Assembly (NCBI RefSeq): GCF_003918875.1 | Contig: NW_025767126.1 | Coordinates: forward strand, 186,001 to 250,000 | Source: Haliotis rubra | Lineage: Eukaryota | Length of the DNA: 64,000 bases | Direction: 5' to 3' | In this document: piece after piece, positions 10,097 through 44,684 of the stretch | Layout: every line of letters begins with the position of its first letter | Numbering within the stretch: position 1 is the stretch's first letter | The notes under the pieces: generated by a model | What the model saw: only the letters and a program-made list of their open reading frames with translations | Databases searched by the model: none | What the model was told of the DNA's origin: nothing | Translations under genes and position numbers: made by a program

Positions 10097-13000
10097 TCAC
10101 AACGTGAGTGGAATCTGGCCTCCCTCCGTCTGGTCGACCTTGCCCTTCAGTGACAGAAGTCCTCGCATCTGATTGGCTGTTGAGTCACTGTTGGCGCCAT
10201 CAGCCTTCGCGTGCCAGGTCCATCCTCCAGCGTAGCCACTGGTGTACAGGTGTTTGAACTGGTCAACGATGTCCATCCCTGCCCCGGACACCTGGTTAAA
10301 CTCGGCTACCACCAACGGCTTCTTAAGTCCGTAGTCGGCGAAGACGTGCTGAAATCGAGTACTTTATGATTTGACCTTCTGACGACCACATGTTCCTATC
10401 TCCGTACACCAATGCCGTAATTGCATGTATCAGTGTAATGACCCACAGGTGATCTTAACGCTACCTGCACTGTCGTAAGTCTTGGTTAAATTATATACGA
10501 CTGTAGGTCTTAAATAGGATTATCGTTGTGTTAATATTACTCTTTGGAACAGGCTAGTGTAGTAGTCAAGTAGTCACACTAGACGCTTCAGTTTAATGTG
10601 GAAGAATTCTAAAGTGCATATCGTAAAGGTTTAGGCCATTGGTGAAACCTACGACAGGCGCGTAGGATGCCTTCTTTCGTGTAAGCCCGGTAGTTTGCAA
10701 AGCTTTATATTTAGATAGTATTGAGAGCTTGTCCAACCTTTTTTGCAACAATCATGTGTAAGCCCGGGCCTTTTTATAATGGTAGATACGCCCCTGTACG
10801 AGAAAGGATCATTATCAGTGATTCGAACCCTCAATCATCGGATCCTGTAACGACCAAGTTCCACCATACCATCATACCCAAAAAGCATACTTCTCTTTGT
10901 GTGACTTTGGACTCGACTGCATTCACAGCATATGGTTTCCAAGAGGTTCTAGATGTAAATTCGAACACCGGTACAAATATCTTAGCAATATCCTGTAATT
11001 CCGAGGAAGAGTGAATGTATGTAACTAATGAAGAGTTTCCGGTCAACAGGACTCACCTTAAAGGGAGAGAACTCGCTGTATTTCCCTTGCCATGAGTAGG
11101 TATGGCTCGAGTAAAACGTCAGCGTGCCCTGAAACCATAACACTGATGTAAACATGTAACTAAGGAATGGATGTTTTACGTATTCTTCATTTAAGTTACC
11201 CCTAACAAATATTTTTTATCAGCCTTCTCGCACTGTTGAACCTGGGATTCCAGGACAAACGATGTTGCGTGTAACCCTGTGCGGCTCTTAAAACCAGAAT
11301 ATGGCGTCTGTGAGTTCAAGGTCGTTCCTCATGCTATCAACCAATGCCTTGAGTATATTTCTGTTTGTTTACATGCTGCCAGGATATAATAGCTATGGAA
11401 TCTCCAAGAAAGGACATCGTCACGTTGTCGCAATGTCGCCCTTTTATAGAATAAAAAATATTATGACAAGCGACAAATGAGAAAGATGTAGCATTATCGC
11501 GCTTTGGTTAATTGTCACACTTTTTGCTTGCTTTTGGTAAAGACGACAACTCGACAATGTCCCTCCTAGGCTTCCGTAGTGTAATACATAGGGGTTAAAC
11601 TGATGCGAGTGTTGATGCCCAAAATAATTTTCTTGACATTAACCTGACCGAAACTTGAGTCAAGTCATTTGTACTTAATGATAGCCTGCCCTTGCATACA
11701 CAACCCAAAGACACGCGTGGATCTTTATCTAACAGACACGTAACTTAAACGACACTGTCGTGTGAGACACTGTCTATAACACTCCCAAAACAGTGTTTGC
11801 CAGTGGATTCGTTGTTAGAGGTTATTTGTCACCAAGCCGAGCACATCTGCACAAACGGATATTGTCAGGTACAAAGCGTAATACCAGTGCAATATTTCTG
11901 AAATTACCATCTTTTTGCCGCCAGCCTTTACAAGGCACTCGTCTTTGTACAAATTGAAGCCTCCCCATTTGTCGACGTTGTCCCTGGCCTCCCACGACCC
12001 TGCGGTGACGAGCGCCTGGGGGTCAACCTGTCTGATAGCATCCACCTGCCAGTTTATGAATCTGAAGAACAAAACGTGAATTGTGATTTTTAAGAACTGA
12101 CTCATTTCTGACTTACATTTTATTGCACGTATGGAGTAATAAAAAGTCATAATACACTTTGCATACATCCGCTACTGACTGACTGAGTATAGTTTTACGC
12201 CGCTTTTAGCAATATTCCAGCAATATCACGGCGGGGAACACTGGAAATGGGCTTCACACATTGTACCCATGTGGGGAATCGAACCCGGGCCTTCGGCGTG
12301 ACGAGCCAACGCTTTAACCACTACGCTACCCCACCGCCCCCACACATCCTACTGACTGACGGAACTTGACTAGCTTGTATGCAGGCCCTGCGTATAGCTG
12401 AAATATTACTGAATGTGTTCAACATCAAGCAAAACAGAAGTGGAAGAGTGAGCACCCGGTCCGTTGTAAGTCAGTTAACCTTTTCGAACGAACTGAAAAT
12501 CCTCGGTTGTTACAGTGAGTGGAACAGTCTTCTGTTTTGACAACAAAAGCGACACAAATCATTCTATAATTATCCGAAACCTCCATTAAAGCAGGGTCCA
12601 TTAAATTCCGACTATATTAGAAACACGTGTCTATGTATCACTATCAGATAGTAATGAATCCAGTGTACGCGAAAAGGCGACACCCGTCACAAACACCTGC
12701 AAAGGCGAGTCAATTGTTCGAAACCAGAGACCCGTTTCACAAAGCGACGGTTGCCCTACCGAAATTACGCAGTTTTACTCACTTGCTTGATAACGGTGTT
12801 ACAACCTACACCGAAACCTCGCTCTCACAGCAATATAGAAGTTGTTCATCCATATATTGCTATCCTTCCTTACTGCCCCAACTTCTAAATGCCTCTCAAA
12901 GAAGTTACTGAGACTGCTTTGTGAAATTATATCCTGTCTCATCCTGCATATCGTTGCCCTACGACTTCTTCATTGTAGACTTAGCTCTACTCCTGTCACT

Positions 13001-16000
13001 TTGGGGCAAGCTTGTCCGGGTGTACGTACTTCAGAAACTCCTCGGCCGTGTACTTCTGGCCCGCCCAACCTGCCCCGGAATTCAGCAGGAACTTTGTATC
13101 AAAACAGGGTTCCGCGTTGGCCAGGTTTGGCTTGATTTCTCCCTCCATCTCGTTGATGATGTCCCAGCCTCCCATTGAGGGCTCGTCCTTCACCGCCTTC
13201 ACCCACGGGATCAGGGCATTGTCTATGTACGACTGCAGCTTAGCTTCGTCCTGGAAGTGTTAATTATGGGGTTTTGGTAATTATCACTGTCAAATTAATA
13301 ATTGGCAAGTGTGAGTGAGTTTAGTTTTACGCCGCTTTTTAGCAATATTCCAGCAATATCACGGCGGTGGACACCAGAAATGGGCTCCACACAATGTACC
13401 CACGTGGGGAATCGAGCCCGGGTCTTCAGTGTGACGACATGTGACGTAAAGCACAACTCAACCAACCTTCAGCGTGACGAGCGAACGCTTTAACCACTAG
13501 GGTACCCCACCGCCCAGTTGGCAAGATAATGTAGAATACATAATGCATCTTGTGGACCATAAAGCAAACGTTTGATGAAATAACACCTGAAAATAATGAA
13601 TGTTTAGCATTTTGCTATACACGAGATTATATTCTCTTTCCGTCAGTTTGTACCTTTGCTTAGTCAGCTGTTGCGACAAGCAGAAGAATTCTAAACCGGA
13701 TCGTCACGGTAAGATCTGATAACTGGACTGTGCATATCTGATAACTGGACTGTGCACGTGTTAACTGTTAACTGGGGTGCATGTGTTAACTGTTAACTGG
13801 CTCAAGATAAATGTGTTACTTTGATCAGCCCGTCCAGCTTGAAGTGGTCGTTCTGTGCGAGAGCCCCGTTCCACAGACAGAAGAAGATGAGGATGTTGTA
13901 CTCCAGGGCCTTCCGCAGGTACTTCTTGATGTCGCTGATGAAGGTGCCCTTCTGATCCAGGCTCACGACCATGCCAGATGCGTCAAAATGGGGAGTGACA
14001 GCTCCCTCGATGTGCACCCACACACCTGGTGGAACATACAGTGAACTACGGTAACTCTAAAGGCCTACTATGTTTAGTTGGTTTAACCATAGTTAATGAT
14101 AATAGATGCTGCAAGAGGGGGGGTCGACAAACATGCCTGCTAAATTGGTCAGTTTGTTATACTTATAGAACTCACCACACCGGTAGAACTATAATCATTT
14201 TATATCCTTTAACATCGGGCTTGCCTATTTATGAAAACATACATGTATGTCCACCATATTGCCGATTGCCGAGTATTGATATTGCCGATTGCCGAGTATT
14301 GATACGATACGTACTGTTCAAAATAACTCAGTCATGTCTACCCAATTTCCACAGACCCAAACAAAGAAAATATCCCAAAATGTTAAATATCCCTGTATTG
14401 TACGTTGTGTGATACATACGAATAGAATTGCCGCCATTGTCAGCTACCAACTTCAGGTACTTTTCAAACTCTAGGTGCCTGTATTCGTAGTTGTTGTCTC
14501 CGAAGTCATAGCCGTAGGCTATCCAGGCCTGGTTGACGCCGGACAGAAAAACCTTCTTGCCGTTTTGTTCAAAGTCAGTCCCCTTCACGGTCAACCGTGT
14601 TCCCTCTGGAAAACAACGTGAAGAATATGGGGTCACGGAAAACAACGTGAAGAGTTATCTAACCTTATGAGGTCACGGAAAACAAGGTGAAGAATTATTT
14701 AACAGTATGACGTCACGGAAAACAACGTAACGAGTTATTATCTAACAGTATGAAGTCACGGAAAACAACGTGACGAGTTATTATCTAACAGTATGAGGTC
14801 ACGGAAAACAACGTGAAGAATTATTTAACAGTATGGAGTCATGGAAAACAACGTGACGAGTTATTATATAACAGTATGAGGTCACGGAAAACAACGTGAA
14901 GAAATATCTAACAGTATGATGTCACGGAAAACAACGTGAAGAATTATTTAACAGTATAAGGTCACGGAAAACAACGTGACGAGTTATTATCTAACAGTAT
15001 GAGGTCACAGAAAACAACGTGAAGAGTTATCTAACCGTATGAGGTCACGGAAAACAACGGGAAGGGTTATCTAACAGTATGAGGTCACGGAAAACAACGT
15101 GAAGTGTTATCTAACAGTATGGGGTCATGGGAAACAACGGGAAGAGTTATCTACCAGTATGAGGTCATGGAAAACAACGTGAAGAGTTATCTAACAGTAT
15201 GAAGTCACGGAAAACAAGGTGAAGAGTTATCTAACCGTATGAGGTCATGGGAAACAACGTGAAGAGTTATCTAACAGTATGGGGTCACGGAAAACAACGG
15301 GAAGAGTTATCTACCAGTATGAGGTCACGGAAAACAACGTGACGAGTTATTATCTAACAGTATGGAGTCACGGAAAACAAGGTGAAGAGTTATCTAACCG
15401 TATGAGGTCATGGGAAACAACGTGAAGAGTTATCTAACAGTATGGGGTCACGGAAAACAACGGGAAGAGTTATCTACCAGTATAGGGTCATGGGAAACAA
15501 GGTGAAGAGTTATCTAACAGTATGAGGTCACGGAAAACAACGTGAAGAGTTATCTAACAGTATGAGGTCACGGAAAACAACGGGAAGAGTTATCTAACAG
15601 TATGGGGTCACGGAAAACAACGGGAAGGGTTATCTAACAGTATGGAGTCACGGAAAACAAGGTGAAGAGTTATCTAACAGTATGGGGTCATGGGAAACAA
15701 CGTGAAGAGTTATCTAACAGTATGGGGTCACAGAAAACAACGTGAAGAGTTATCTAACAGTATGGAGTCACGGAAAACAACGTGAAGAGTTATCTAACAG
15801 TATGGGGTCACGGAAAACAAGGTGAAGAGTTATCTAACAGTATGGGGTCACGGAAAACAACGTGAAGTTATTTAACAGTATGGGGTCATGGAAAACAACG
15901 TGAAGAGTTATCTAACAGTATGGGGTCATGGAAAACAACGTGAAGAGTTATCTAACAGTATGGGGTCACGGAAAACAAGGTGAAGAGTTATCTAACAGTA

Positions 16001-19000
16001 TGGGGTCACGGAAAACAACGTGAAGAGTTATGTAACAGCATGGGGTCATGGAAAACAACGTGAAGAGTTATCTAACAGTATAGGGTCATGGGAAACAACG
16101 TGAAGAGTTATCTAACAGTATGGGGTCATGGGAAACAACGTGAAGAGTTATCTAACAGTATAGGGTCATGGGAAACAAGGTGAAGAGTTATCTAACCGTA
16201 TGAGGTCATGGGAAACAACGTGAAGAGTTATCTAACAGTATGGGGTCATGGGAAACAACGTGAAGAGTTATCTAACAGTATAGGGTCATGGGAAACAAGG
16301 TGAAGAGTTATCTAACCGTATGAGGTCATGGGAAACAACGTGAAGAGTTATCTAACAGTATAGGGTCACGGAAAACAACGTGAAGAGTTATCTAACAGTA
16401 TGTGGTCACGGAAAACAACGTGAAGAGTTATCTACCAGTATGAGGTCACGGAAAACAACGTGACGAGTTATTATCTAACAGTATGGAGTCACGGAAAACA
16501 ACGTGAAGAGTTATCTAACAGTATGTGGTCACGGAAAACAACGTGAAGAGTTATCTACCAGTATGAGGTCACGGGAAACAACGTGACGAGTTATTATCTA
16601 ACAGTATGGAGTCACGGAAAACAAGGTGAAGAGTTATCTAACAGTATGGGGTCACGGAAAACAACGGGAAGAGTTATCTAACAGTATGGGGTCACGGAAA
16701 ACAACGTGACGAGTTATTATCTAACAGTATGGAGTCACGGAAAACAAGGTGAAGAGTTATCTAACAGTATGGGGTCACGGAAAACAACGGGAAGAGTTAT
16801 CTAACAGTATGGGGTCACGGAAAACAACGGGAAGAGTTATCTAACAGCATGGGGTCATGGAAAACAACGTGAAGAGTTATCTAACAGTATGGGGTCACGG
16901 AAAACAACGGGAAGAGTTATCTAACAGCATGGGGTCATGGAAAACAACGTGAAGAGTTATCTAACAGTATGGGGTCACGGAAAACAACGGGAAGAGTTAT
17001 CTAACAGTATGGGGTCACGGAAAACAACGGGAAGAGTTATCTAACAGTATGAGGTCATGGGAAACAACGTGAAGAGTTATCTAACAGTATGGGGTCATGG
17101 GAAACAACGTGAAGAGTTATCTAACAGTATAGGGTCATGGGAAACAAGGTGAAGAGTTATCTAACCGTATGAGGTCATGGGAAACAACGTGAAGAGTTAT
17201 CTAACAGTATGGGGTCACAGAAAACAACGTGAAGAATTATCTAACAGTATGGGGTCACGGAAAACAACGGGAAGAGTTATCTACCAGTATGAGGTCACGG
17301 AAAACAACGTGAAGAGTTATCTAACAGTATGTGGTCACGGAAAACAACGTGAAGAGTTATCTACCAGTATGAGGTCACAGAAAACAACGTGACGAGTTAT
17401 TATCTAACAGTATGGAGTCACGGAAAACAAGGTGAAGAGTTATCTAACAGTATGTGGTCACGGAAAACAACGTGAAGAGTTATCTAACAGTATGTGGTCA
17501 CGGAAAACAACGTGAAGAGTTATCTACCAGTATGAGGTCACGGAAAACAACGTGACGAGTTATTATCTAACAGTATGGAGTCACGGAAAACAAGGTGAAG
17601 AGTTATCTAACAGTATGTGGTCACGGAAAACAACGTGAAGAGTTATCTAACAGTATGAGGTCACGGGAAACAACGTGACGAGTTATTATCTAACAGTATG
17701 GAGTCACGGAAAACAAGGTGAAGAGTTATCTACCAGTATGAGGTCATGGAAAACAACGTGACGACCTATTATCTACCAGTATGAGGTCACGGAAAACAAC
17801 GTGACGAGTTATTATCTAACAGTATGGAGTCACGGAAAACAAGGTGAAGAGTTATCTAACAGTATGTGGTCACGGAAAACAACGTGAAGAGTTATCTACC
17901 AGTATGAGGTCATGGAAAACAAGGTGACGACTTATTATCTACCAGTATGAGGTCACGGAAAACAACGTGGCGAGTTATCTAACAGTATGGGGTCACAGAA
18001 AACAACGGGAAGAGTTATCATACACAGATAATGGGGAATGTGTGGGATAACGCATAATAAATGTGACAAAGCCACCTCGATATTATAAGCCAAATCCATT
18101 TTTATCCAAGTTTCACTGTATTATCATAACATGCAGTTGACTTGCTGGCATCTGTTCACACATCATTCCTGTTTCCGTTTCCTGGGCTCATCACATGTTT
18201 TGATGTCACGTGACTCTAACTTCATGAAACAAGAGGTGTCTGAAATGTTGACTGATCTTTTGAGTATTTCCTCTTTGAAATCAACAACTGAATGTGAGAA
18301 CACATAAGAAAAACACTCTTTACCTGAAATATAGGGGTGGGGACACGTTTGTCAAAGTCGCCAGTCTTAATGTGTACAATGTGTGAAGCCCATTTCTGGT
18401 GTCCCCAAAGCCGTGATATTGCTGGAATATAGCTATAAGCGGCGTAAAACTAAACTCACACTGGCATGGGCTGCAAAGGTTGGCGGCTGGAACCTGTATC
18501 TGAGGTGACTGGCTTTAAATGCATGACGTGGGGTCATTTCTAGTGGGCGGCCATCACGGGGACAGTATATGACTTGACTGTTATGCTCAAAACGTGACCA
18601 TAAGTGCCAAATGGTGTCCTATGGAGTTGAATGGACGAGACGCAGTGTTTTATGAGTGAGTATGGTTTTACGCTGCTTTTAGCAATATTTCAGCAATATC
18701 ACGGCGTGGGACATCAGAAATGGACTTCACACATTGTACCCATGTGGGGAGTCGAACACAGGTCTTCAGCGTGACGAGCGGACGCTTTAACCAATAGACT
18801 ACCCCACTACCCCACGTGAATGATGAACCTTCATCGCTTTCGGCTTTCCTCCCTCATCAAGCCGGCGTTTCCTGACCGAAATTTGTTCAAGGCAGCATTA
18901 AACCAAACCCACTCCTTGGAAGATAAATACCATTTACATGTACTATATATTGGGTAATAACTATTGGTTACGTGTATATTAATATAATAATTAAATGACA

Positions 19001-22000
19001 TATGACGTCCTCACGTACTTCGAGCTGGAGCTTTCCCTAAATCAGGTACTGCCATGGTAACGGGTTTTGACGTCACTGGTTGTGCTGTGACTGGTTGGTT
19101 GGTGTGTCCTGTGTTCGGGTTTGGTGTGTTCTGATTTCCTGTGTTGGGGTTCTGGCTTCCACCAATGGAACACAGTGCCACCGCTTTTGTGTCGGGGGCG
19201 TCACAACTTTCTGATATCCACTCGCCAACGTCGGAGTATTGACGGACAATGGCTGCACATAACGACCCGGTCACAGTCGTGGGATTTCCTGAAATCGAGA
19301 GAAAAAATAATCAGAGGATGTTTTTGCCTCTAACACCGAAACCCCGATGATTCTTCCAGGGGAAACGGATGGCGCGGCCGTGTGTACAGACATGCGCCTC
19401 TCATTGTACCAGAAGCTCATGATCGTGGTTCGAATCCCATATATGTTCTGAAAAGAATTCTTGGTTCCTTGTGTCTGTTGACATGCCGTGCTCTGAAGCT
19501 GTTAAATATCTAAGATCTACATTACTTAAGGCCATCCTTCCATATTTATATAAATGCAATATTGTCTAGAACTGCGAGATTCGGAAATTAGCTAAAACGT
19601 TCAATGAGTACATATCATTTAGGAACACCAGAACGAAGACAATTTGATTTCAGCATTTCGAAACCTTTATCCATGCAATAAATATTTAAACTTTAGGTGT
19701 GGTTGTCGGTACATGTACGTGCTTTGAAAACATTAAAGAATTTAAAATCCATCCATTTCATTAATACTGCAGCTTTTAAAACGTCAATCAAAAATATCTA
19801 TACGAAGAATTTACGAAGGGTAAATTGGTTACCGGCATGCCACATTGTGTAGTCCAGAGAGGTGCCATCGGTCCACTTCCAGTCTTGTCCATCATTCTTC
19901 AGACCAATCCAACAGTTGTGCGGGGAACCTGGGATATTATATTAGCAAAGTATGGATTTGTTTGTAGGTATAATTTAAACATTCAGCAATATTATAACTG
20001 TAGAATTTTATCCAATCCAGTGTTGCCATCAAGAGGATCAGTCTACCCAAATGGGATACTATGATATTCATCATGAGTGAGCCTGACTAAATGATTCCGA
20101 TTGGCGCCTCTTCTGACGTCCCTAGTCTGGGCTGTTAAAGTATGTGGGCGGTAGGGTATCCCTAGTGGTTAAAGCGTTGCCTCGTCACGCCGAAGACCCG
20201 GGTTCGAATCCCCACATGGGTACAATGTGTGAAGCCCATTTCTGGTTACCCCCGCCGTGATGTTGCTGGAATATTGCTAACAGCGGCGTAAAACCAAACT
20301 CAGTCAGTTTTAAAGTATGTGCTAGCCAAAGTCTTCGCGGGGTGAGCAAAGTAATGGTGCGAGGTACCACTTATGTTTGTGACGTGGCCTGAGTGTGGGG
20401 AGATACTCTAGTATTCCAGGACATACAAGGTTCAAGTGGCCCCTGGTAGTCGTCTGAGCACAGGCAGTTTCAATGTGTGACATGGTTGATTGTGTGTCGT
20501 TGTCACCCAAGCGTTAGTCTGGAAGATGCTTGTGAATCTACCTTGACTTCATAACTGAGACGCCATTGCAAGCATCCCCGTGTAATACAGCGAGAATATT
20601 GTTGACATAATTTTTGCACAAATGAATGCCAAACAAATGTTTCATATTGCTGGTTGGTGATATCAGCCTTTGGTGATGTCCTAGTACACCACAACATTTT
20701 CGCGAAAATGTATTGATATCCTTGATTTTCACTGATCCAATGAAATAATATTCCTTGTATTTGAGTGTTTAAGATCTTCATTCATATTTACCAGGTTCAA
20801 TTACTCATGGAAAGGTAGGGCCATAGCTGGAATAGAACAAAACTCACTCACTCACTCAAATATCTACAACCATGCAACAAGATCTTGAACTTACCAGAAC
20901 CTCTGCATATGTCCTTCAACCTGTCGTTATGGTTTCGGTCATGAATGGAAGCAAGATGGCCACCTTTCGCAACACATGCCTTCTCGGCTTCTGGGAAGCT
21001 CACCGGCTTATCGATAATTTCAAGCTGCTCTGAAATATAGTGATTATAGTATGGGATTGTGGTGGAGAGTGATAAACAAACATTAAAATCAGCGAGGCTA
21101 ACCGCTACTCTTAATGATGGGAACAACCATATTGATTCAAAACTAGTTAAGTAGTATCCTAACAGGATCTGTCTAAGCCAAGGGTCAAACTGAGACGTAA
21201 GTGCTTTTCAATACTAATTCTCTGAACTGGGTCTAAGTCAATACTCTATGGAGCTGGGTCTAAGTATACTGTATGGAACTGGGTCTAAGTCAATACTCTA
21301 TGGAATTGGGTCTAAGTATGTCTAAGTAACTGTATGGAACTGGGTCTAAGTCAATACTCTATAGAACTGGGTCTAAGTCAATACTCTATGGAGCTGGGTC
21401 TAAGTAGTCTATGGAACTGGGTCTAAGTACTCTATGGAACTGGGTCTAAGTATGGGTCTACTCTCAACTGGGTCTAAGTCAATCTATGGAACTGGGTCTA
21501 AGTCAATACTCTATGGAACTGGGTCTAAGTCAATACTCTATGGAACTGGGTCTAAGTCAATACTCTATGGAACTGGGTCTAAGTCAATACTCTATGGAAC
21601 TGGGTCTAAGTCAATATTCTATGGAACTGGGTCTAAGTCAATACTCTATGGAACTGGGTCTAAGTCAATACTCTATGGAACTGGGTCTAAGTCAATACTC
21701 TATGGAACTGGGTCTAAGTCAATACTCTATACTGAACTGGGTCTAAGTCAATACTCTATTGAACTGGGTCTAAGTCAATACTTTTTGGAACTGGGTCTAA
21801 GTCAGTACTCTATGGAACTGGGTCTAAGTCAATACTAAATGGAGCCTCTTGTCACACATTGACCTTTACCAGTTCGTTTAGTGTTGATGCAGGTCATTTT
21901 GATTTTGAATGTTTTCCTAAACTTATGAATATCCAGTGTGATGAAAAGGGTCACTTATCGCCCGTTGAACTTTACTTGAACATCTTCATTAAACTATTGA

Positions 22001-22423
22001 AACAACTTACCTGCTGCCACAAAATAGAGCAGCGCAGCGCACAGTGTGATGACGGACCACATCTGTAACAAAACAATTAGGAATTTAATGATACGCAGAT
22101 CATTGTTTCCGGCTGCTATCTAACATAAAGCAGAATAAGAATACTTTGTGCTCTCCTCGTACCCAAGAAAGCTAAGCAGGTCATGCTCACCCGCTTCGTG
22201 AGCACTCTGTTTCATCACAATTCATATTAACTTCACCGCCATTTTGCCTTTTGCGCCCAAAGCAATCAGCAGGTAATCGAGGCTGATTGAAGCTGGCTAG
22301 TCTCAGAGGTTGAAATCTGATATATTACCATCTGCCAGTTTGGACTGTTCGCCAGTATAATGTCAGAAGAAATGCATAAAAGTTGCAAAGCGTTTAAGAA
22401 GCAGTTTAAAGTATCCTCACCAT
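10097..22423 (-). CDS. Secreted C-type lectin domain + linker + GH5_10 endo-beta-1,4-mannanase fusion protein, paralog A (~548 aa)
   Basis: Exons (minus): ATG mini-exon ending 22421 (putative), 22062-22011 (MWSVITLCAALLYFVAA, signal peptide), 21029-20895 (FPEAEKACVAKGGHLASIH), 19928-19833 (CWIGLKNDGQDWKWTDGT), 19288-19019 (CAAIV..GEWISESCD..ALC + NPNTG/QPVT linker), 14605-14420 (FLSGVNQAW..DFG..GGNSIR), 14025-13820 (VWVHIEG..LWNGA), 13250-13030 (GWDIINEMEG..GAGWAG), 12061-11908 (FINWQ..VTAGSW), 11128-11057 (HTY), 10348-10097 (KPLVVAEF..GGWTW..TGA). All introns GT-AG with compatible phases and no internal stops. The catalytic part closely resembles Mytilus Man5A as recalled. Confidence 0.88.
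12174..12340 (-). mobile_element. tRNA-derived SINE family 1
   Basis: Same consensus as 7681-7850. Further copies at about 13308-13513(-), 18330-18460, 18653-18814(-), 20146-20307, 22951-23096, 30404-30562, 40473-40590, 45052-45200(-), 45697-45866, 46409-46571(-), 49467-49991, 54774-54938, 58492-58657(-), 60303-60450, 61192-61358, 62436-62850, 63643-63910. Confidence 0.85.
14608..18020. repeat. 40-bp (some 43-bp) minisatellite array abutting the acceptor of the first GH5 exon, paralog A
   Basis: Unit GGAAAACAACGTGAAGAGTTATCTAACAGTATGGGGTCAC, roughly 85 copies. Confidence 0.97.
21222..21838. repeat. 27-bp minisatellite in an intron of paralog A
   Basis: Unit TATGGAACTGGGTCTAAGTCAATACTC. Confidence 0.95.
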
Positions 22424-22500
22424 TGGTTCCACCTGGAATGTCTGTGGTGGTTGTGCCTAATCTATATACGTAGGTATGACCTCAATCTGTTATCTTTCAC
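22421..22500 (-). promoter_or_regulatory. Putative core promoter and first mini-exon of paralog A
   Basis: Minus strand reads AGATAAcagatTGAGGTCA..cgTATATAg..cagacattccaggtgg-aaccaATG|gtgagg; conserved with 26285-26375 of paralog B. Confidence 0.55.
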
Positions 22501-26284: not shown

Positions 26285-26375
26285 GTGGAAGATAACAGAT
26301 TGAGGTCACTCCCACCTATATCTGTAGCTTGGGCACCAACATCGCAGACATTCCAGGTGAAAACAATGGTGAGGA
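26285..26375 (+). promoter_or_regulatory. Putative core promoter and first mini-exon of paralog B
   Basis: gAAGATAAcagatTGAGGTCA..ccTATATc..cagacattccaggtgaaaacaATG|gtgagg: GATA-like site, nuclear-receptor-like half-site and TATA-like box, conserved between paralogs. Confidence 0.55.
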
Positions 26376-32300: not shown

Positions 32301-35300
32301 TTGATAAAATATTTTTCAAATTCATCTGGACTGACAAAACTGACAAAATTAAGAGAAGTACCTTGAAAAAGATTATATACATGGGGGTTTAAGAATTATC
32401 GACATAAAACCTTTTATCAATGCCTTGAAACTATCCACTTTGAGACTTTATTTAAGAAAATCATCAATATGTAATCCATGCAATTTTCCGTTACATGATA
32501 TCATGAAATTTGGTGCTAATTTCTATAATATTGCTGATATTAATAATCCATATTGGAAAGATGTTTTAAGAGCATGGAACATGTATTGTACTAACATTAC
32601 CATAGAGGAAAACAACATTGATGAAATTTTAGCACAGCCATTGTGGTTTAATCATAATTTTAAATACCAAAATCATTATATCAGTCATTGGGCAAATAAA
32701 GGACTATTAACCATCAAAGACATGTGTGATGAAGAGGTTTGATGTCTTTTTGAATCTTTAAAAAGTAAATATGCAATAAAAGGGACAGAATTAGATCATA
32801 GATATGTTCTAAATAATATACCTGAATCATGGAAGAATACAATAACAAATCACAGGTGTATAAATAACTATGACATGAATCTTAACTCCTATCAAAAGAA
32901 TTTTATGAAATCATTACAAGGATCAAGATTATTTTATGATATATTGTTATTTAACAATAATAACCGTCATATGAGTCATAAATGGGAGAATGTGTTTGAA
33001 GATACTGACTTTGATTGGCCAATGATTTTTAAGTCTTACAGACAAGACATTAATGATGTAAAACTCTTAGAGTTCCAATATAAATTTTTACACGGTATTA
33101 TCTATACCAAAAAGGAACTTTTAAAAATGAACCTTATCCAGAGCGCCTCATGCAGCTTTTGTTAAGATGAAGGTGAAAACTTGTGCCATGTTTACTGGGA
33201 ATGTAGTGAAACTAAGAAGTTTTGGAAGGATCTTCAAATTTGGATTAACACTTATTTGATACAAAAAGTCAATTTGACAAAATATGTGGTGTATTTTGGC
33301 TCCTTAAGTAAAAACCCATTACTTAATCATATAATCATTTCAGCAAAAAGACAGATCTATGTCTCTTCTTTGAAAAACAACATTCAAAAATGCGATAACT
33401 TTATAAAGACTTTAAAAGATATTTTTTTCTGTTGAAAGCTTCATTGCCAAAAGGAAGAATAAAATGAAGAAATTTGCTAATAAATGGCATCCATTATTCC
33501 CAGTATTCAAACCTGACCTGTGTATGAAGCAACCGCTTCTTTTGTAAAATCTTGATCTGTTTCCCCTTTTGAAAAATTATCTTTGTTTTAGTTATATATT
33601 GACTAGTTAGTTAATGGCACTGGTGTAACTTTGGGGAACACATATTATAGGTTGGATATAAGACACAATATACAACACAATAAGCCGGATGTTGCGCAAT
33701 ATATAACACAACACATTGGATGTGACACAAGACACAGCATGACATGTCAGAATAATTGTGGCACTATATACAACATATGTTAGATAAGACATATTTACAA
33801 TGTATATCAGATAATACACTATGTACAACACGATAGATTGGCCGTGACGCTATATACAATATGCTATGTCGGGTGTTGCACTATATACAGTATGATATGT
33901 CAGATGTGGCGCTATATACAACATGGTATGTCAGATGTGGCGCCGTATACAACAAAATATGTTGAATGTGTATGCAATATACAACATGATATGTTGGATG
34001 TGACACAATATACAGCTTGATATATCAGATGTGGTGCTATAAACAATATGATATGTTCATATATGATGCTATTTACAACATGACATATGGGATGTAATAC
34101 TATATACTTATGATATATCAGATATGACATTACATCCAACTTATGATGGAAGACTTTACTTTTTCATGAAAATAAAAAAAAATTGATTGAAAAAAATAAA
34201 TAGATAAATAGTTCTTATCTAATATTTAGTACATGTAAATGGAATTTGTGTTCAAGGAGTGAGTTTGGTTAAACGCTGCCTCGAACAAAATTCGGTCACG
34301 AAGCGTTGGCTTGATGTGAATGGAAAGCACGAAAAGTGATAAAGGTTCAGCACTCACGCGAGTATCTGGTACATGTGTATGATAGTTGTTTTCAAAGGAG
34401 TGAGTTTGTTTTTCACGAACCTACACTATTAAATACTTCTTCCCGTTGTTTTCCATGACTCCATACTCTTAGATAACTCTTCACGTTATTTTCCGTGACC
34501 CCATACTATTAAATACCTCTTCACGTTGTGTCCCGTGACCACATACTGTTAGATAACACTTCACGTTGTTTTCCGTGACCCCATACTGTTAGATAACTCT
34601 TCACGTTGTGTCCCGTGACCACATACTGTTAGATAACACTTCACGTTGTTTTCCGTGACCCCATACTGTTAGATAACTTTTCACGTTGTTTTCCGTGATC
34701 CCATACTGGTAGAAAACTCTTCACGTTGTTTTCTGTGACCCTACACTATTAAATACTTCTTCCCGTTGTTTTCCGTGACCTCATACTGTTAGATAACTCT
34801 TCACGTTGTTTTCCGTGACCCCATACTATTAGATAACTCTTCAAGTTGTTTTCCATGAACCGATACTGTTAGATAACTCTTCACGTTGTTTTCCGTGACC
34901 TCATACTGTTAGATAACTCTTCACGTTGTTTTCCATGACCCCATACTGTTAGATAACTCTTCACGTTGTTTTCCGTGACCCCATACTGTTAGATAATTCT
35001 TCACGTTGTTTTCCGTGACCCCATACTGTTAGATAACTCTTCACGTTGTTTTCCGTGACCCCATACTGTTAGATAACTCTTCACGTTGTTTTCCGTGACC
35101 CCATACTGTTACATAACTCTTCCCGTTGTTTTCCGTGACCCCATACTGTTAGATAACTCTTCATGTTGTTTTCCATGACCCCATACTGTTAGATAACTCT
35201 TCACGTTGTTTTCCGTGACCCCATACTGTTAGATAACTCTTCACGTTGTTTTCCGTGACCCCATACTGTTAGATAACTCTTCACGTTGTTTTCCGTGACC

Positions 35301-38300
35301 CCATACTGTTAGATAATTCTTCACGTTGTTTTCCGTGACCCCATACTGTAAGATAACTCTTCACGTTGTTTTCCGTGACCCCATACTGTTAGATAACTCT
35401 TCACGTTGTTTTCCGTGACCCCATACTGTTAGATAACTCTTCCCGTTGTTTTCCGTGACCCCATACTGTTAGATAACTCTTCACGTTGTTTTCCATGACC
35501 CCATACTGTAAGATAACTCTTCACGTTGTTGTCCGTGACCCCATACTGTTAGATAACCTATCCCGTTGTTTTCCGTGACCACATACTGTTAGATAACCAC
35601 GTTGTTTTCCGTGACCCCATACTGTTAGATAACTCTTCACGTTGTTTTCCGTGACCCCATACTGTTAGATAACTCTTCACGTTGTTGTCCGTGACCCCAT
35701 ACTGTTAGATAACTCTTCACGTTGTTGTCCGTGACCCCATACTGTTAGATAACTCTTCACGTTGTTTTCCGTGACCCCATACTGTTAGATAACTCTTCAC
35801 GTTGTTTTCCGTGACCCCATACTGTTAGATAACTCTTCACGTTGTTGTCCGTGACCACATACTGTTAGATAACTCTTCACGTTGTTTTCCGTGACCCCAT
35901 ACTGTTAGATAACTCTTCACGTTGTTTTCCGTGACCCCATACTGTTAGATAACTCTTCACGTTGTTGTCCGTGACCCCATACTGTTAGATAACTCTTCAC
36001 GTTGTTTTCCGTGACCACATACTGTTAGATAACTCTTCACGTTGTTTTCCGTGACCCCATACTGTTAGATAACTCTTCACGTTGTTTTCCGTGACCCCAT
36101 ACTGTTAGATAACTCTTCACGTTGTTGTCCGTGACCCCATACTGTTAGATAACTCTTCACGTTGTTTTCCGTGACCCCATACTGTTAGATAACTCTACAA
36201 AGTTGTTTTCCGTGACTCCATACTGTTAGATAACTCTTCACGTTGTTTTCCGTGACCCCATACTGTTAGATAACTCTTCACGTTGTTTTCCGTGACCCCA
36301 TACTGGTAGATAACTCTTCACGTTGTTTTCCGTGACCCCATACTGTTAGATAACTCTTCACGTTGTTTTCCGTGACCCCATACTGTTAGATAACTCTTCA
36401 CGTTGTTTTCCGTGACCCCATACTGTTAGATAACTCTTCACGTTGTTTTCCGTGACCCCATACTGTTAGATAACTCTTCACGTTGTTGTCCGTGACCCCA
36501 TACTGTTAGATAACTCTTCACGTTGTTTTCCGTGACCCCATACTGTTAGATAACTCTTCACGTTGTTTTCCGTGACTCCATACTGTTAGATAACTCTTCA
36601 CGTTGTTTTCCGTGACCCCATACTGTTAGATAACTCTTCACGTTGTTTTCCGTGATCCCATACTGGTAGAAAACTCTTCACGTTGTTTTCCGTGATCCCA
36701 TACAGTTAGATAACTCTTCACGTTGTTTTCCGTGACCCCATACTGTTAGATAACTCTTCACGTTGTTTTCCGTGACCCCATACTGTTAGATAACTCTTCA
36801 CGTTGTTTTCCGTGACCCCATACTGTTAGATAACTCTTCACGTTGTTTTCCGTGATCCCATACTCTTCACGTTGTTTTCCGTGATCCCATACAGTTAGAT
36901 AACTCTTCACGTTGTTTTCCGTGACCCCATACAGTTGGATAACTCTTCACGTTAGTGACCCATACTGTTAGATATTTCTTCCGTTGTTTTCAGTGACCCC
37001 ATACTGTTAGATAACTCTTCACGTTGTTTTTCCGTGACCCGATACTGTTGGTGACTCTTCACGTTGTTTTTCCGTGACCCGATACTGTTAGATAACTCTT
37101 CACGTTGTTTTCCGTGACCTCATACTGTTAATAAATTCTTCCCGTTGTTTTCTCGTGATGATCCATACTGGTAGATAAACTCTTCCCGTTGTTTTCCGTG
37201 ACCCTGGGTACACTGTTAAATAACTCTTCGTTGTTTTCCGTGACCTATTACTGATAGATAACTCTTCACGTTGTTTTCCGTGACTTCATACTGTTAGATG
37301 ACTTCTTCACGTTGTTTTCCGTGACCTCATGCTGGTAGATAACTTATTGTTTTCCGTGACCCGATACTGTTAGATAACTTTTCGTGACCTCATACTGTTA
37401 GATAACTCTTCCGTTGTTTTCCGTGACTCCATACTGTTAGATAACTCTTCACGTTCTTTTAGCGTGACCCTATACTGTTAGATAACTCTTCACGTTGTTT
37501 CCATGACCCCATACTGTAGACCCCATACGTTGTTAGATAACTCTTCTTCCGTTGTTTTCCGTGACCCCATACTGTTAGATAACTCTTCACGTTGTTTTCC
37601 ATGACCCCATACTGTTAGATAACTCTTCACGTTGTTTTCCGTGACCCCATACTGTTAGATAACTCTTCACGTTGTTTTCCGTGACCCCATACTGTTAGAT
37701 AACTCTTCACGTTGTTTTCCGTGACCCCATACTGTTAGATAACTCTTCACGTTGTTTTCCGTGACCCCATACTGTTAGATAACTCTTCACGTTGTTTTCC
37801 GTGACCTCATACTGTTAGATAACTCTTCACGTTGTTTTCCGTGACCCCATACTGTTAGATAACTCTTCACGTTGTTTTCCGTGATCCCATACTGGTAGAA
37901 AACTCTTCACGTTGTTTTCCGTGATCCCATACAGTTAGATAACTCTTCACGTTGTTTTCCGTGACTCCATACAGTTAGATAACTCTTCACGTTGTTTTCC
38001 GTGACCCCATACTGTTAGATAATTCTTCACGTTGTTTTCCGTGACCCCATACTGTTAGATAACTCTTCACGTTGTTTTCCGTGACCCCATACTGTTAGAT
38101 AATTCTTCACGTTGTTTTCCGTGACCTCATACTGGTAGATAACTCTTCCCGTTGTTTTCCGTGATCCCATACTGGTAGAAAACTCTTCACGTTGTTTTCT
38201 GTGACCCTACACTATTAAATACTTCTTCCCGTTGTTTTCCGTGACCCCATACTGTTAGATAACTCTTCACGTTGTTTTCCGTGACTTCATACTGTTAGAT

Positions 38301-41300
38301 GACTCTTCACGTTGTTTTCCGTGACCCCATACTGTTAGATAATTCTTCACGTTGTTTTCTGTGACCCAATACTGTTAGATAACTCTTCACGTTGTTTTCT
38401 GTGACCCCATACTGTTAGATAACTCTTCACGTTGTTTTCCGTGACTCCATACTGTTAGATAACTCTTCACGTTCTTTTCCATGGCCCCATACTGTTAGAT
38501 AATTCTTCGCGTTGTTTTCCGTGACTCCATACTGTTAGATAACTCTTCACTTTGTTTTCCATGACCCCATACTGTTAGATAACTCTTCACTTTGTTTTCC
38601 GTGACCTCATACTGTTAGATAACTCTTCACGTTGTTTTCTGTGACCTCATACTGGTAGATAACTCTTTACCTTGTTTTCCAGAGGGGACACGGTTGATCG
38701 TGAAGGGCACTCACTTTGAACAAAACGGCAAGAAGGTTTTTCTATCCGGCGTCAACCAGGCTTGGGTATCCAACGGGCACGACTTCGGAGACAACAACTA
38801 CGAATACAGACACCTAGATTTTGAAAAGTACCTGAAGATGGTTGCCGACAATGGCGGCAATTCTATTCGTATGTATCACACAATCTACACATAAGGAATT
38901 TGTAACATTATTTTTTTGGTCTTGAACAACAAGAATTGGGTAGATATGACTGCGTTCAGGTTTTCTGGTGTCAGGACTTACCGTTACTGCAGCAATATCG
39001 AAGCTGGACACATTGCACCCATCTGAGACTCGAAACCAGTGGATAGTTTTTTCTTGTTCTTCGGCATTGTTGATACCTGTTTGTATAATTCGAGATGATT
39101 TATTACGTGGTCTTCAGGTCTTTACAGTTTGAATTGTATCATTTCTTCTTCTTCATTTCACTTGCACAAGGTGAAATGTGAAGCAGCCAGGTGAGTGAGT
39201 GAGTGAGTTTATTTGGACCAAAATATCCAGTGATCAACAACATGAGCTTCGATCTACGCAATTGGGATACGACGACATATGTCAACCAAGTCAGCAAGCC
39301 TGACCACCCGATCCTGTTAGTCGTCTCTTACGACCAGCATGGGTTACTGAAGATCAATTCTATCCCGGATCTTCACGGGTATGCAGTCAGTAGAAGGTGC
39401 ATGGTCAGTAGCACAGTGGACATCATACCGTGGTGTATCTGTTGATGACAACATATAGTTATCAGCCATTATTCTACATTGACGAGATAGGACGATTTCA
39501 ATTTAAATAGATCAGAGTTGTTCGCAAGGAGTGCTTTCTGAGTTGATGGTAAAAAATGATTTATCACACAAGTTCCCAATCCCGGCTTTGAAATCTCCGC
39601 AGACATCTAGTCTACTTTTAGGTCCATATAGGACCAATTTCTGTTCTTAGGATGTAAAAGGGTCATTTTATTTTTCTTTCATTACAACTGTGAAGATCCG
39701 GTTAGGACTGGTCTTCAGCAACCCATGCTTGTCGTAAGAGGCGACCGGGTGGCCGACTTGGTTTATGCATGTCATCGTATCTCAGCTGCGTAGATAGATG
39801 CTCGTGGTGTCAATTACTGGATTGTCTGGTCAAGACTCGATTATTTTCAGACCGCCACCATATAGCTGGAATATTGCTGAGTGTGGCGTTAAACAACAAA
39901 CAAGCAAATATGTCCACATGCTGGCGTTTCCAGAAGGGATTAAAAAAACTTCATATCAGGATGTTCTTTACTAATCATAGTTTCGCGCATTTGCTCCCAC
40001 AGTCGTTTCAGAGAATATTAACAGTTGAAGAAAGAAAGGAATGAAGGCTTCCTTTAATATCACATGTTCATACATACATGTTCATCTAGGTGTGTGGGTG
40101 CACGATGAGGGAGCAGTCTCTCCCCATTTCGACTCATCTGGCATGGTCGTGAGCCTGGATCAGAAGGGCACCTTCATCAGCGACATCAAGAAGTACCTGC
40201 GGAAGGCCCTGGAGTACAACATCCTTGTCTTCTTCTGTCTGTGGAACGGGGCCCAGGCGCAGAATGACCACATCCACATTGACGGGTTAATCAAAGTAAT
40301 TTGGACCTATATACGTCATTATTTTGTCTTTCACTCCATTTATCATCTCTTTTGATGAACAAACAGATAATGTACTTGACAAAAAAAAGGATTTGTGATA
40401 CAATGAATACAATCACCCGTAAAGAAAACCACAGGAAGACACCTAATATTGGCAATAGTTTTGACTTGCTCCGCTCGTCACGCCGAAGACCCGGGTTCGA
40501 TTCCCCACATGAGTACGATGTGTGAAGCCCATTTCTGGTGTCCCCAGCCGTGATATTGCTGGGATATTGCTAAAGGATAAAACTCTCATTCAGTTATTCC
40601 GAGAGGCAGGAATGGTAGGAAAGGGGTTCAACAAGAGATATACTGTATACAATGGTTTACCTGGATCCTGGGTGTAAGGGCTTCCGTGGATCCCTCCCCA
40701 CCCCACCACCCCACCCTCCTTTTATGAAAATTCCGTCAAGGGTATAGGTTCAAAATATCCATGTTTAGCCCGTGAGTAATCATTGGTCTGTCAGCCTCAC
40801 TGTCGTCTTTGTAGGAGCCTCCAAAGTTGATGATGGAATAGTTATTTGATATTGTCCCTATTCTACTGCAACAGAGTCACACATGCCTAGGGCTGTTTTT
40901 TTAAAAACACATCATGTGCCCTTTTCTTTCAGACACGTGTCCAAAGCATACACTTCGAATGGCTGCTGCCTAGTCCAGATAAATGCGTCACTTCTCCCAC
41001 AATACTTTGCCAAGTTCATAGAACTGTGATACTGCACAAATAGTTAGACCCTATCATTCACGTTTTCAGGACGAAGCTAAGCTGCAGTCGTACATAGACA
41101 ATGCCCTGATCCCGTGGGTGAAGGCGGTGAAGGACGAGCCCTCAATGGGAGGCTGGGACATCATCAACGAGTTTGAGGGAGAAGTCAAACCAAACCTGGC
41201 CAACGCGGAACCCTGTTTTGATACAAACTTCCTGCTGAACTCCGGGGCAGGTTGGGCGGGCAAGCTGTACACGGCGCAGCAGTTTCTGAAGTACGTATAC

Positions 41301-44300: not shown

Positions 44301-44684
44301 ATCTACGATTATCGTCAGTCGCCTAGTTTAACCAGGTGTCATCGATAAATGCAATTGGGTCGGCAGTTGTATACACAGATATGAACACCTTGTTGGCAGA
44401 AGGTCAAATTATAATAGCAACGTATCTTTCAGCACGTCTTCGCTGACTACGGACTTAAGAAGCCGTTGGTGGTCGCCGAGTTTAACCAGGTGTCCGGGGC
44501 AGGGATGGACATCGTTGACCAGTTCAAACACCTGTATACCACTGGCTACGCTGGAGGATGGACCTGGCATATACGTGCTGAAGGATCGAACTCAGACTCA
44601 CCAGCCACACAGATGCGAGGACTCCTGTCACTGAAGGGCAAGGACGACCAGACGAAGGGAGGCCAGATTCCACTCACGTTGTGA
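26366..44684 (+). CDS. Secreted C-type lectin domain + linker + GH5_10 endo-beta-1,4-mannanase fusion protein, paralog B (~543 aa)
   Basis: Exons: ATG 26366-26368 (putative), 26731-26782 (MWSIITLCAALLCYVAT), 28503-28637, 29998-30093, 31193-31447, 38683-38868, 40090-40295, 41070-41290 (WDIINEFEG), 43092-43245, 43630-43701, 44433-44684 (KPLVVAEF). Exon lengths equal those of paralog A except a linker exon 15 nt shorter; phases consistent. Confidence 0.88.
26759..27580. repeat. 35-bp minisatellite amplified from the signal-peptide exon end and donor of paralog B
   Basis: Unit TTGTTGTGTTATGTGGCAACAG|GTAGGACAATGNT, ~23 copies; the first copy is coding. Confidence 0.93.
27975..28420 (-). mobile_element. 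3' fragment of non-LTR retrotransposon
   Basis: INEGR..RLCPLC..VNEIHFTFVCPFY.DLR zinc-knuckle end. Confidence 0.65.
28844..29198 (+). mobile_element. Longer tRNA-derived SINE (MetaSINE-like)
   Basis: tRNA head plus gtcataccaaaagacgttaaaatatggtacttg..cctgcctggcgctc (Meta-domain-like, from recall), (CCTCA)n tail, TSD tctagttggttgt. Confidence 0.7.
31531..34206 (+). mobile_element. 5'-truncated L1/Tx1-like LINE in the linker-GH5 intron of paralog B
   Basis: KNWRPITLLNSLYKI, QTGFIPGRNISEN, QYADD, LTLIGKITVIKTL, CSFC..E..CHVYWEC; A-rich tail; 22-bp TSD aatagttcttatctaatattta (31509-31530, 34207-34228); degenerate ~35-bp tandem repeat at 33640-34140. Confidence 0.88.
34420..38680. repeat. 40-bp minisatellite array (inverted copy of 14608-18020), paralog B
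   Basis: Unit GTGACCCCATACTGTTAGATAACTCTTCACGTTGTTTTCC, roughly 105 copies, ending at the ttgttttccAG acceptor (38682). Confidence 0.97.
41304..41540 (-). mobile_element. SINE-like repeat with V-domain-like core (family 3)
   Basis: cccatgcttgtaagagccgactaacgggatcgggtggtcagg; shares its 3' tail with family 1. Other copies near 29740-29968, 39191-39379, 39690-39905, 44935-45040, 58670-58840, 62180-62295. Confidence 0.65.
41585..42440 (+). mobile_element. Decayed 3' LINE fragment
   Basis: RLPYQAYQMM..LD..GKKTWAS and IEDELHILLICPKY motifs. Confidence 0.6.
42705..42872 (+). mobile_element. tRNA-derived SINE family 1, near-consensus copy
   Basis: ggggcggtggggtagcctagt..cgccgaagacccgggtt..aatattgctaaaagcggcgtaaaac. 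Confidence 0.85.
43778..43884. mobile_element. Hairpin MITE (Harbinger-like, CTG TSD)
   Basis: TIRs GGCCCTGTTCCTCAAAGCGATCGTAGCGCTA / TAGCGCTACGATCGCTTTGAGGAACGGGGCC; related copies at about 44020-44096, 44098-44195 and 44275-44330. Confidence 0.8.

Follow-up and report, generated by a model that had tools for sequence, protein, structure and literature searches.

In microbes, glycanases are as a rule modular and carry appended binding modules. Accounts of animal digestive glycanases usually present a bare catalytic domain. Mytilus edulis Man5A (structure 2C0H, 353 aa) and Aplysia kurodai AkMan (3VUP, 351 aa) share the catalytic domain of the genes reported here over its full length, including the NE and EFN motifs. 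A 375-aa single-domain gene of Haliotis rubra, presumably of the HdMan type, has the GH5 exon pattern 427/154/72 that also occurs in these genes. A first-pass annotation of the locus had described the characterised molluscan GH5_10 mannanases as single catalytic domains. This is correct for the two solved molluscan enzymes, but several snails carry an N-terminal CBM2. In the single-domain mannanases the signal peptide is joined straight to the GH5 domain, whereas the two genes described below interpose a C-type lectin-like domain (CTLD) and a linker, together about 165 aa.

The window, the whole stretch of 64,000 nucleotides of H. rubra DNA that was analysed, corresponds to contig QXJH01000441.1. 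Two head-to-head neighbours were found in it, gene A on the minus strand (22423-10097) and gene B on the plus strand (26366-44684). In both, a signal peptide is followed by a CTLD, an Asn/Thr/Pro-rich linker and a GH5_10 beta-mannanase. A and B are intact paralogs, and we consider it likely that each is transcribed as one unit, the product being a secreted protein of two modules from an old molluscan CTLD-GH5_10 family. In this protein a CTLD (about 120 aa, six conserved cysteines) would be followed by a disordered Asn/Thr/Pro-rich linker (about 45-50 aa) and the GH5_10 domain. The coding features are as follows, with a slash marking the splice site.

22421..22423, minus strand: gene A, RefSeq start codon closing the 5' exon (ATG/GTGAGG); TATA-like TATATA about 45 nt upstream
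22011..22062, minus strand: gene A, signal-peptide exon, 52 nt, phase 1 at its end
20895..21029, minus strand: gene A, CTLD exon 1, 135 nt, both ends phase 1
19833..19928, minus strand: gene A, CTLD exon 2, 96 nt, both ends phase 1, WIGL motif
19019..19288, minus strand: gene A, CTLD exon 3 and Asn/Thr/Pro-rich linker, 270 nt, donor CGA A/gtacgt
14605-14420, 14025-13820, 13250-13030, 12061-11908, 11128-11057 and 10348-10097 (with stop), minus strand: gene A, GH5_10 catalytic part, six exons
26366..26368, plus strand: gene B, RefSeq start codon closing the 5' exon (ATG/GTGAGG); TATA-like motif about 49 nt upstream
26731..26782, plus strand: gene B, signal-peptide exon, 52 nt, phase 1 at its end
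28503..28637, plus strand: gene B, CTLD exon 1, 135 nt
29998..30093, plus strand: gene B, CTLD exon 2, 96 nt
31193..31447, plus strand: gene B, CTLD exon 3 and linker, 255 nt
38683-38868, 40090-40295, 41070-41290, 43092-43245, 43630-43701 and 44433-44684 (with stop), plus strand: gene B, GH5_10 catalytic part, six exons

The ten coding exons of each gene were assembled in frame with GT-AG borders throughout, giving 1644 nt (547 aa) for gene A and 1629 nt (542 aa) for gene B. The claim that both paralogs are intact and splice in frame was thereby borne out, with the linker-exon donor CGA A/gtacgt, the acceptor ttccag/AG GGx of the first GH5 exon and the junction peptide ..APARKGTRL present in both genes, as first annotated. 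In gene A the donor falls at 19019 and the acceptor at 14605; the corresponding positions of gene B are 31447 and 38683. The GH5 exons were also said to have no signal peptide or start of their own, and indeed the first of them contains neither, its alignment with the mature 2C0H chain beginning at residue 3. The translations were identical to RefSeq XP_046582031.1 (gene A) and XP_046582030.1 (gene B), save for one extra N-terminal methionine in RefSeq that brings the proteins to 548 and 543 aa. In gene A, the RefSeq protein begins MMWSV, and the additional methionine comes from the short 5' exon. Since the models are identical to RefSeq, they are not new. A neighbouring gene C was considered as a further member inside the window and rejected, because it lies about 3 kb before the window start.

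When the GH5 part was compared with solved structures, the four best matches were 2C0H (3.6e-123), 3VUP (9.7e-113), 5Y6T (3.6e-99) and 4OOU (8.2e-90), all of them beta-1,4-mannanases that we take to belong to GH5_10. The alignment spans residues 3-346 of the 353 in 2C0H. The acid/base motif WDIINE aligns with WDIMNE and the nucleophile motif VVAEFN with VIGEFN. N349, E350 and E481 were invariant across 30 family members. Judged by its sequence, the GH5 part of A and B is a GH5_10 endo-beta-1,4-mannanase that retains both catalytic glutamates, and it would cleave the beta-1,4-mannan of dietary algae. In a full-length AlphaFold2 model the GH5 part had a pLDDT above 90 with strands and helices alternating over residues 190-530; the linker reached 25-33 and the CTLD 35-70. 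A look-up in the ESM Atlas returned generic mannanase clusters only.

The architecture is real and old, since scallops share it, and it has already been annotated automatically. CTLD-GH5_10 proteins are predicted in H. rubra, H. asinina, H. rufescens and H. cracherodii and in Ylistrum, Mizuhopecten, Pecten and Argopecten. The first-pass annotation knew of no description of this architecture. We likewise found no paper describing or characterising it in the literature searched, but automatic predictions covering at least eight species of mollusc are public, such as XP_046582030.1, XP_046582031.1 and Mizuhopecten OWF36220.1 (UniProt A0A210PIB1). The family is common to abalones, scallops and at least one other mollusc, for which sequencing-run contigs are described below. 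In the GH5 tree, H. asinina and H. cracherodii contribute orthologues of both A and B. A single clean clade of CTLD-bearing enzymes was rejected, because the well-supported branches of this tree need at least four gains or losses. Single-domain genes nest among the CTLD forms, and the closest single-domain relative, from Lottia, is intronless.

The exon sizes were 55/135/99/186/204/427/154/72/237 in scallop, 52/135/96/255/186/206+221/154/72/252 in abalone gene B and 37/192/427/154/72/246 in the single-domain abalone gene. Phase 1 is found at the end of the signal-peptide exon, of the CTLD exons and of the first GH5 exon, and abalone and scallop agree in exon sizes and phases. The CTLD cassette of three exons, with phase-1 ends on either side, occupies the site of the phase-1 intron between signal peptide and GH5 in the single-domain abalone gene. 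Its position and phases fit one old exon-shuffling event, in which the cassette would have inserted into this intron, downstream of the signal-peptide exon and ahead of GH5. A duplication of the cassette would then have given the double-CTLD form, and some lineages would have lost the cassette later. Both paralogs are under purifying selection: between A and B, dN/dS was 0.26 for the CTLD, 0.31 for the linker and 0.27 for the GH5 part, with a dS of 0.25.

The CTLD was recognised with Pfam Lectin_C (PF00059) at 56.2 bits in gene A and 55.3 bits in gene B (cut-off 22.6). These searches required whole proteins; with single exons Lectin_C appeared below threshold only and GH5 not at all. When the CTLD was modelled alone, AlphaFold2 gave a pLDDT of 71.7 and a pTM of 0.72, and the model matched solved CTLDs at TM 0.73-0.79 with probability 1.00. 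Six cysteines, among them an unusual extra pair, and the WIGL motif are invariant across the CTLDs of the fusion family. The EPN/QPD-type motif, downstream Glu and WND of Ca2+-dependent sugar-binding C-type lectins were absent from A and B, and we therefore call these domains CTLDs and not demonstrated lectins. At the Ca2+-site-2 positions gene A has NPT...S...WIS and gene B SPS...A...WMA. None of the five canonical ligand positions keeps its residue in A, B or C, and their CTLDs are only 35-41% identical to the scallop-type CTLDs. The scallop proteins, the contigs of the other mollusc and the double-CTLD forms retain EPD...E...WSD. With the canonical site replaced in A and B and kept in these relatives, the first-pass idea that the CTLD might serve as a carbohydrate-binding module is plausible as a hypothesis. 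Any glycan binding by A and B would be Ca2+-independent and non-canonical.

There is an appreciable chance, though well short of even, that the fusion is real and the CTLD does not bind the substrate. It could instead bind the protein or mucus matrix of the gut or microbes, mediate oligomerisation or act as a removable pro-domain. The replaced ligand positions in A, B and C, kept by other members, point in this direction. So do the nearest solved CTLDs by sequence, which are type II antifreeze proteins and domains of the DEC-205, PLA2R and Endo180 type; many of these are not sugar binders. The would-be ligand-binding loop is moreover the least confident region of the CTLD-alone model. However, the CTLD is under purifying selection like that of the enzyme and has been tethered by the linker to a mannanase since before the gastropod/bivalve split. 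In other snails a true CBM2 sits in the same position, which argues that the slot holds a targeting module, and some CTLDs, such as that of Dectin-1, are known to bind glycans independently of Ca2+.

We propose tentatively, as a possibility and not as the expected outcome, that an animal lectin fold of the immune type was recruited before the gastropod/bivalve split as the targeting module of a digestive glycanase. It would have been kept for several hundred million years and remodelled in abalone A, B and C to a Ca2+-independent binder of beta-mannan or algal walls. If so, it would be an animal-invented CBM family new to CAZy. In A and B the animal's own lectin-type fold fills the slot held by CBM2 in some snails, and the exon anatomy indicates the route. 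Should the CTLD prove to bind mannan or algal walls, it would found an animal-derived family of binding modules, and the canonical EPD/WSD, lost-site, double-CTLD and cassette-loss forms would provide a natural series. Because abalone is a farmed herbivore, enzymes acting on insoluble algal mannan are of applied interest. The weight of the finding is tempered since the gene models are already public.

Reading through the linker donor leads to a stop 3 codons on (..APARST), which the first-pass annotation did not include. A lectin-only product is therefore formally possible. Skipping of the three CTLD exons would remain in frame because every boundary is in phase 1, and the result would be an enzyme with the signal peptide joined to GH5. 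That the locus mainly yields these two separate spliced products is in our estimate unlikely. The nesting of single-domain genes among the CTLD forms would suit it, and the intronless Lottia relative could derive from such a skipped mRNA, but RefSeq has no such isoform for A or B and the full fusion is carried by contigs of another mollusc. These were assembled from SRR31116221, SRR31116226 and SRR31116234, and each holds an uninterrupted 1611-nt open reading frame with both domains. The contigs are short and start within 8 nt of each other. The longest has no poly(A) tail; a genomic retrocopy is a less likely, though conceivable, source of the fused frame. Sequencing runs matched over 14300-19400 showed no splice joints, and the RNA-labelled ones no exon coverage; three of the matching runs were DNA-like and five held SINE copies only. 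A protein collection queried with residues 96-262 yielded no transcript-derived fragment across the junction.

Fused single transcription units remain the preferred reading of A and B. Intron 4 separates the linker from the GH5 exons. This intron is unusually long, with 4413 nt in gene A and 7235 nt in gene B, and consists mainly of satellite, SINE copies and one retroelement. The repeats in intron 4 and at the signal-peptide exon of gene B are as follows.

14626..18019, minus strand: 40-bp minisatellite, about 84 copies, gene A intron 4
34406..38681, plus strand: the same 40-bp minisatellite, about 107 copies, gene B intron 4, stopping 2 nt before the first GH5 exon
31452..33435, plus strand: decayed retroelement in gene B intron 4, broken open reading frames, one matching reverse transcriptase (RVT_1)
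26757..27575, plus strand: 35-bp tandem repeat, 23.5 copies, beginning within the gene B signal-peptide exon

The minisatellite unit in gene A is a copy of the pyrimidine tract ahead of the acceptor, and the AG occurs only in the last copy. The 35-bp unit of gene B contains the 3' end of the signal-peptide exon with its donor (GCAACAG/GTAGGA). A hidden leader in intron 4 was sought in two ways, as sequence resembling the leader that adjacent single-domain genes carry, and with a scan for an ATG, a hydrophobic stretch and a phase-1 donor. All similarity matches had E > 0.1, the scan gave one unconvincing candidate in gene A and none with a phase-1 donor in gene B, and no leader-like exon common to both genes was found. 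The corresponding junction is shared by the paralogues and the scallop genes, where the intron measures just about 310-600 nt (scallop, double-CTLD gene and gene C). In gene C, RefSeq isoform X2 joins the CTLD exons to foreign GH5 exons further downstream, which lie past a leader-like exon hinting at a separate gene there, so that chimeric models or read-through transcripts do occur in the cluster.

It is very improbable that the lectin and GH5 exons of A and B are separate genes, a small secreted lectin ending in ..APARST and a mannanase whose leader went unseen, so that the annotation pipeline and the first-pass annotation would both have built chimeras: the early stop, the long intron and the gene C isoform would favour this, but the first GH5 exon starts inside the mature enzyme with neither Met nor leader, the repeats account for most of the intron, the junction is conserved across short introns, the fused frame is uninterrupted in three runs, the linker is as constrained as both domains, and a search of 5.8 billion proteins turned up no small free-standing lectin (67-213 aa) closely related to this CTLD, a weak negative because the search depends on shared 5-residue words.

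Among known systems, the scallop CTLD-GH5_10 proteins (Mizuhopecten yessoensis OWF36220.1/A0A210PIB1 and XP_021340974.1, Ylistrum, Pecten and Argopecten; 519-522 aa), which are predicted only, resemble A and B in domain order, the six CTLD cysteines and the sizes and phases of their exons (135 and 96-99, then linker exon and GH5). They differ in the retained ligand motifs and in a junction intron of 580 nt without satellite, and identity is 46% overall and 35-40% in the CTLD. The double-CTLD GH5_10 of four Haliotis species (H. rubra XP_046551546.1, about 700 aa) shares family and cassette structure with A and B, but has two tandem three-exon cassettes with EPD/WSD in both. The predicted CBM2-GH5_10 proteins of Biomphalaria glabrata, Physella acuta and Batillaria attramentaria also combine an N-terminal module, a linker and an animal GH5_10, whereas their module is a cellulose-binding CBM2 and not an animal CTLD. 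In the GH5 tree, Biomphalaria and Physella fall in the other molluscan clade and Batillaria in the large clade of CTLD forms. Pfam found CBM_2 in these snail relatives and no CBM family in A or B.

For a GH5_8 mannanase of Saccharophagus degradans with three CBMs, binding was shown by experiment (PMC8121702). Such microbial modular mannanases resemble A and B in the catalytic domain joined by a flexible linker to appended modules, but belong to another GH5 subfamily and use bacterial CBM folds. A CBM-like role of the CTLD in A and B is plausible as an analogy, which is distinct from membership in a CAZy CBM family. Following the CBMs of the microbial enzymes, the tethered CTLD would hold the mannanase on its substrate or on a surface.

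The exons of genes A and B, the two paralogues combining a C-type lectin-like domain (CTLD) with a GH5 subfamily 10 beta-mannanase (GH5_10), were found by open reading frames, by similarity between A and B and by splice signals, and were then assembled. The genes form a divergent pair in the region. Each contains ten coding exons, one for the signal peptide, three for the CTLD (the third including the linker) and six for GH5. All introns are GT-AG, and exons 1-5 each end in phase 1. The following features were located (slash, splice site):

22423-10097, minus strand: gene A, exons of 52, 135, 96, 270, 186, 206, 221, 154, 72 and 252 nt, 547 aa
26366-44684, plus strand: gene B, exons as in gene A except that the fourth has 255 nt, 542 aa
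22423-22421, minus strand (A), and 26366-26368, plus strand (B): short 5' exon ending ATG/GTGAGG, conserved between A and B

The short 5' exon contributes one extra methionine, and a TATA-like motif is found 45-49 nt upstream. The linker donor CGA A/gtacgt is joined to the acceptor ttccag/AG GGx, giving ..APARKGTRL, and a stop follows three codons past the donor if it is read through. The fusion structure proposed for both genes by the first-pass annotation, with this exact junction, was confirmed. The translations of B and A correspond to XP_046582030.1 and XP_046582031.1, minus the extra first methionine; these gene models had therefore been public before. When one GH5 exon was used as the query of a whole-library HMMER search, a 543-aa protein encoded on QXJH01000441.1 of GCA_003918875.1 was matched at residues 312-384. 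Directly downstream of gene B, from 46097 onward on the minus strand (22732-24319 in our locus L001), lies an Img2-domain (PF05046) gene.

In whole proteins A and B the Pfam profile Lectin_C scored 55-56 bits (cut-off 22.6). An AlphaFold2 model of the CTLD only reached a pLDDT of 71.7 and a pTM of 0.72, with TM scores of 0.73-0.79 against solved CTLDs. In the full-length model the pLDDT was above 90 for GH5 and 25-33 for the linker, and the CTLD was poorly modelled. The GH5 part aligned end to end with the mannanases Mytilus Man5A (2C0H, 3.6e-123) and Aplysia AkMan (3VUP), and it retains both catalytic elements, the NE motif (acid/base) and the Glu that serves as nucleophile, which are invariant among 30 relatives. 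The first GH5 exon begins at the third residue of mature Man5A; the catalytic domain starts exactly with that exon and, as had been claimed, lacks a leader of its own. The linker, in which Thr and Pro are abundant and no N-X-S/T sequon was seen, may be O-glycosylated.

Indirect evidence that the fused genes are real is strong. In H. asinina, H. rufescens and H. cracherodii the orthologues of A and B are predicted to have the CTLD-GH5_10 architecture, as are gene C, a third H. rubra paralogue, and proteins of four scallops, and a double-CTLD form of 700 aa is predicted in four Haliotis species. From each of three runs of one series (SRR31116221, SRR31116226 and SRR31116234) one short contig of 1.7-3.2 kb was assembled. 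The contigs start at most 8 nt apart and show 24-32 nt of difference over the coding part; in each, a single unbroken 1611-nt reading frame covers CTLD, linker and GH5. Since their genomic relatives have 9-12 exons, the contigs resemble the mRNA of a fused gene from another mollusc, which adjoins a unionid mussel in the GH5 tree. For CTLD, linker and GH5 the dN/dS between A and B was 0.26, 0.31 and 0.27 respectively, at a dS of 0.25. In the tree, each of A and B groups with orthologues of its own from H. asinina and H. cracherodii, so both copies are old and have been maintained.

The lectin and GH5 exons of A and B could belong to separate genes, a rival that we keep because this gene cluster does contain chimeric models or read-through transcripts. 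Gene C (XP_046582032.1; within our locus L009, QXJH01000441.1 172731-186028) has the strand of gene A and is placed some 3 kb ahead of the window's start. Its RefSeq isoforms X1 and X2 differ at 21 positions scattered across the GH5 part, and the X2 model extends past gene C. A leader-like exon directly after the last exon of gene C (L009 ~13012-13067) resembles the leaders of 399-413-aa single-domain genes in other Haliotis species. X2 therefore links the CTLD exons of gene C to GH5 exons that are not its own and lie further downstream, where they may belong to a separate single-domain gene. For A and B we consider such a separation very improbable. The intron at the junction of linker and GH5 (intron 4 in A and B) measures only about 310-600 nt in gene C, the double-CTLD gene and scallop, too little to accommodate a second promoter. 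In intron 4 of A and B a shared signal-peptide-like exon was looked for and none was seen, nor was there a match to the leader of neighbouring single-domain genes. One fused gene each for A and B, as interpreted by the first-pass annotation, appears to be the right reading at the gene level. The length of intron 4 in A and B is due solely to a minisatellite and SINE copies, together with a decayed retroelement in B. These and other repeats of the window are:

14626-18019, gene A, intron 4: 40-bp minisatellite, ~84 copies, 3.4 kb
34406-38681, gene B, intron 4: 40-bp minisatellite, ~107 copies, 4.3 kb
31452-33435, sense strand, gene B, intron 4: decayed retroelement of non-LTR type with several broken reading frames and an RVT_1 match
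18233-18916, 12176-12343, 13311-13515, 20146-20306, 30402-30558, 40470-40575 and 42705-42870: SINE-like copies, ~160 bp
26757-27575, gene B: 35-bp tandem repeat, 23.5 copies, starting within the signal-peptide exon
21224-21843, gene A, intron 1: unrelated 27-bp array

The minisatellite copies in A and B are 88-90% alike, and the arrays account for the strong GC and AT skew at 14-18 kb and 34-38 kb. Their unit duplicates the pyrimidine tract directly upstream of the true acceptor; 52 units in A and 78 in B read TTTTCCGTG, and TTTTCCAG occurs in the final copy only. The 35-bp unit contains the 3' end of the signal-peptide exon and its donor (GCAACAG/GTAGGA), so that many donor look-alikes follow the true one in gene B; no such array is present at the equivalent place of gene A. 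The retroelement likewise has no counterpart in gene A. The SINE-like element, with the flanking consensus GGGTTCGATTCCCCAC from contigs, looks tRNA-derived and has an enormous copy number in sequencing runs, including RNA-labelled runs of other organisms. Run matches to the H. rubra locus are DNA, or SINE copies alone.

As further evidence for the fusion, the exon maps of the relatives were compared, and their layout is conserved.

Exon lengths (nt) of CTLD and single-domain GH5_10 genes
Scallop: 55/135/99/186/204/427/154/72/237
Abalone B: 52/135/96/255/186/206+221/154/72/252
Double-CTLD gene: two cassettes, each 135/90-102/195-291
Single-domain H. rubra gene: 37/192/427/154/72/246

In these maps phase 1 is found at the end of the signal-peptide exon, of the CTLD exons and of the first GH5 exon. 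The CTLD cassette thus sits in what is, in single-domain genes, the phase-1 intron between the signal-peptide exon and GH5, a pattern that would be expected of exon shuffling. In the GH5 tree every CTLD form falls into one large clade with gastropod and bivalve sequences together; among the CTLD forms stand single-domain forms and a single CBM2 form, and at least four changes of state are required by well-supported branches. Six cysteines, with an unusual additional pair directly before WIGL among them, are common to all fusion CTLDs, as is the exon structure. From these shared characters we read a single origin before the gastropod-bivalve split, which several losses would have followed. Among single-domain genes, the nearest to A and B is one of Lottia gigantea (KB202014.1), with 67% GH5 identity; it is intronless with the signal peptide directly on GH5 and may be a retrocopy. 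Among the CTLDs of scallop, the double-CTLD form and the SRR3111622x contigs identity is 47-55%, whereas the CTLDs of A, B and C are just 35-41% identical to this set. It follows that the A/B/C domain diverged fast or, less likely, was replaced.

That the architecture was undescribed holds for the literature searched, where full-text searches found no paper on a CTLD-GH5_10 enzyme, but not for the sequence databases with their predicted models. Binding modules of molluscan glycoside hydrolases are listed for GH2, GH9, GH13, GH16, GH18, GH20 and GH81, GH5 not being among them (PMC7560691). For a GH5_10 phylogeny, extra domains were stripped before alignment, and no comment on them was found there (PMC5576741).

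The proposal that the CTLD acts as a binding module stays plausible but is weakened for A and B. The Ca2+/sugar-site positions EPD...E...WSD are retained in the scallop, SRR3111622x-contig and double-CTLD domains, whereas A has NPT...S...WIS and B has SPS...A...WMA, with all ligand positions altered. The A/B domain is thus a CTLD by profile and fold but lacks what defines a Ca2+-dependent lectin. It remains constrained and tethered to the enzyme, and in some snail enzymes a true CBM2 occupies the slot held by the CTLD in A and B; a putative targeting role is therefore still our best guess. We rate the CTLD-GH5_10 enzymes as modular glycanases, a known kind.
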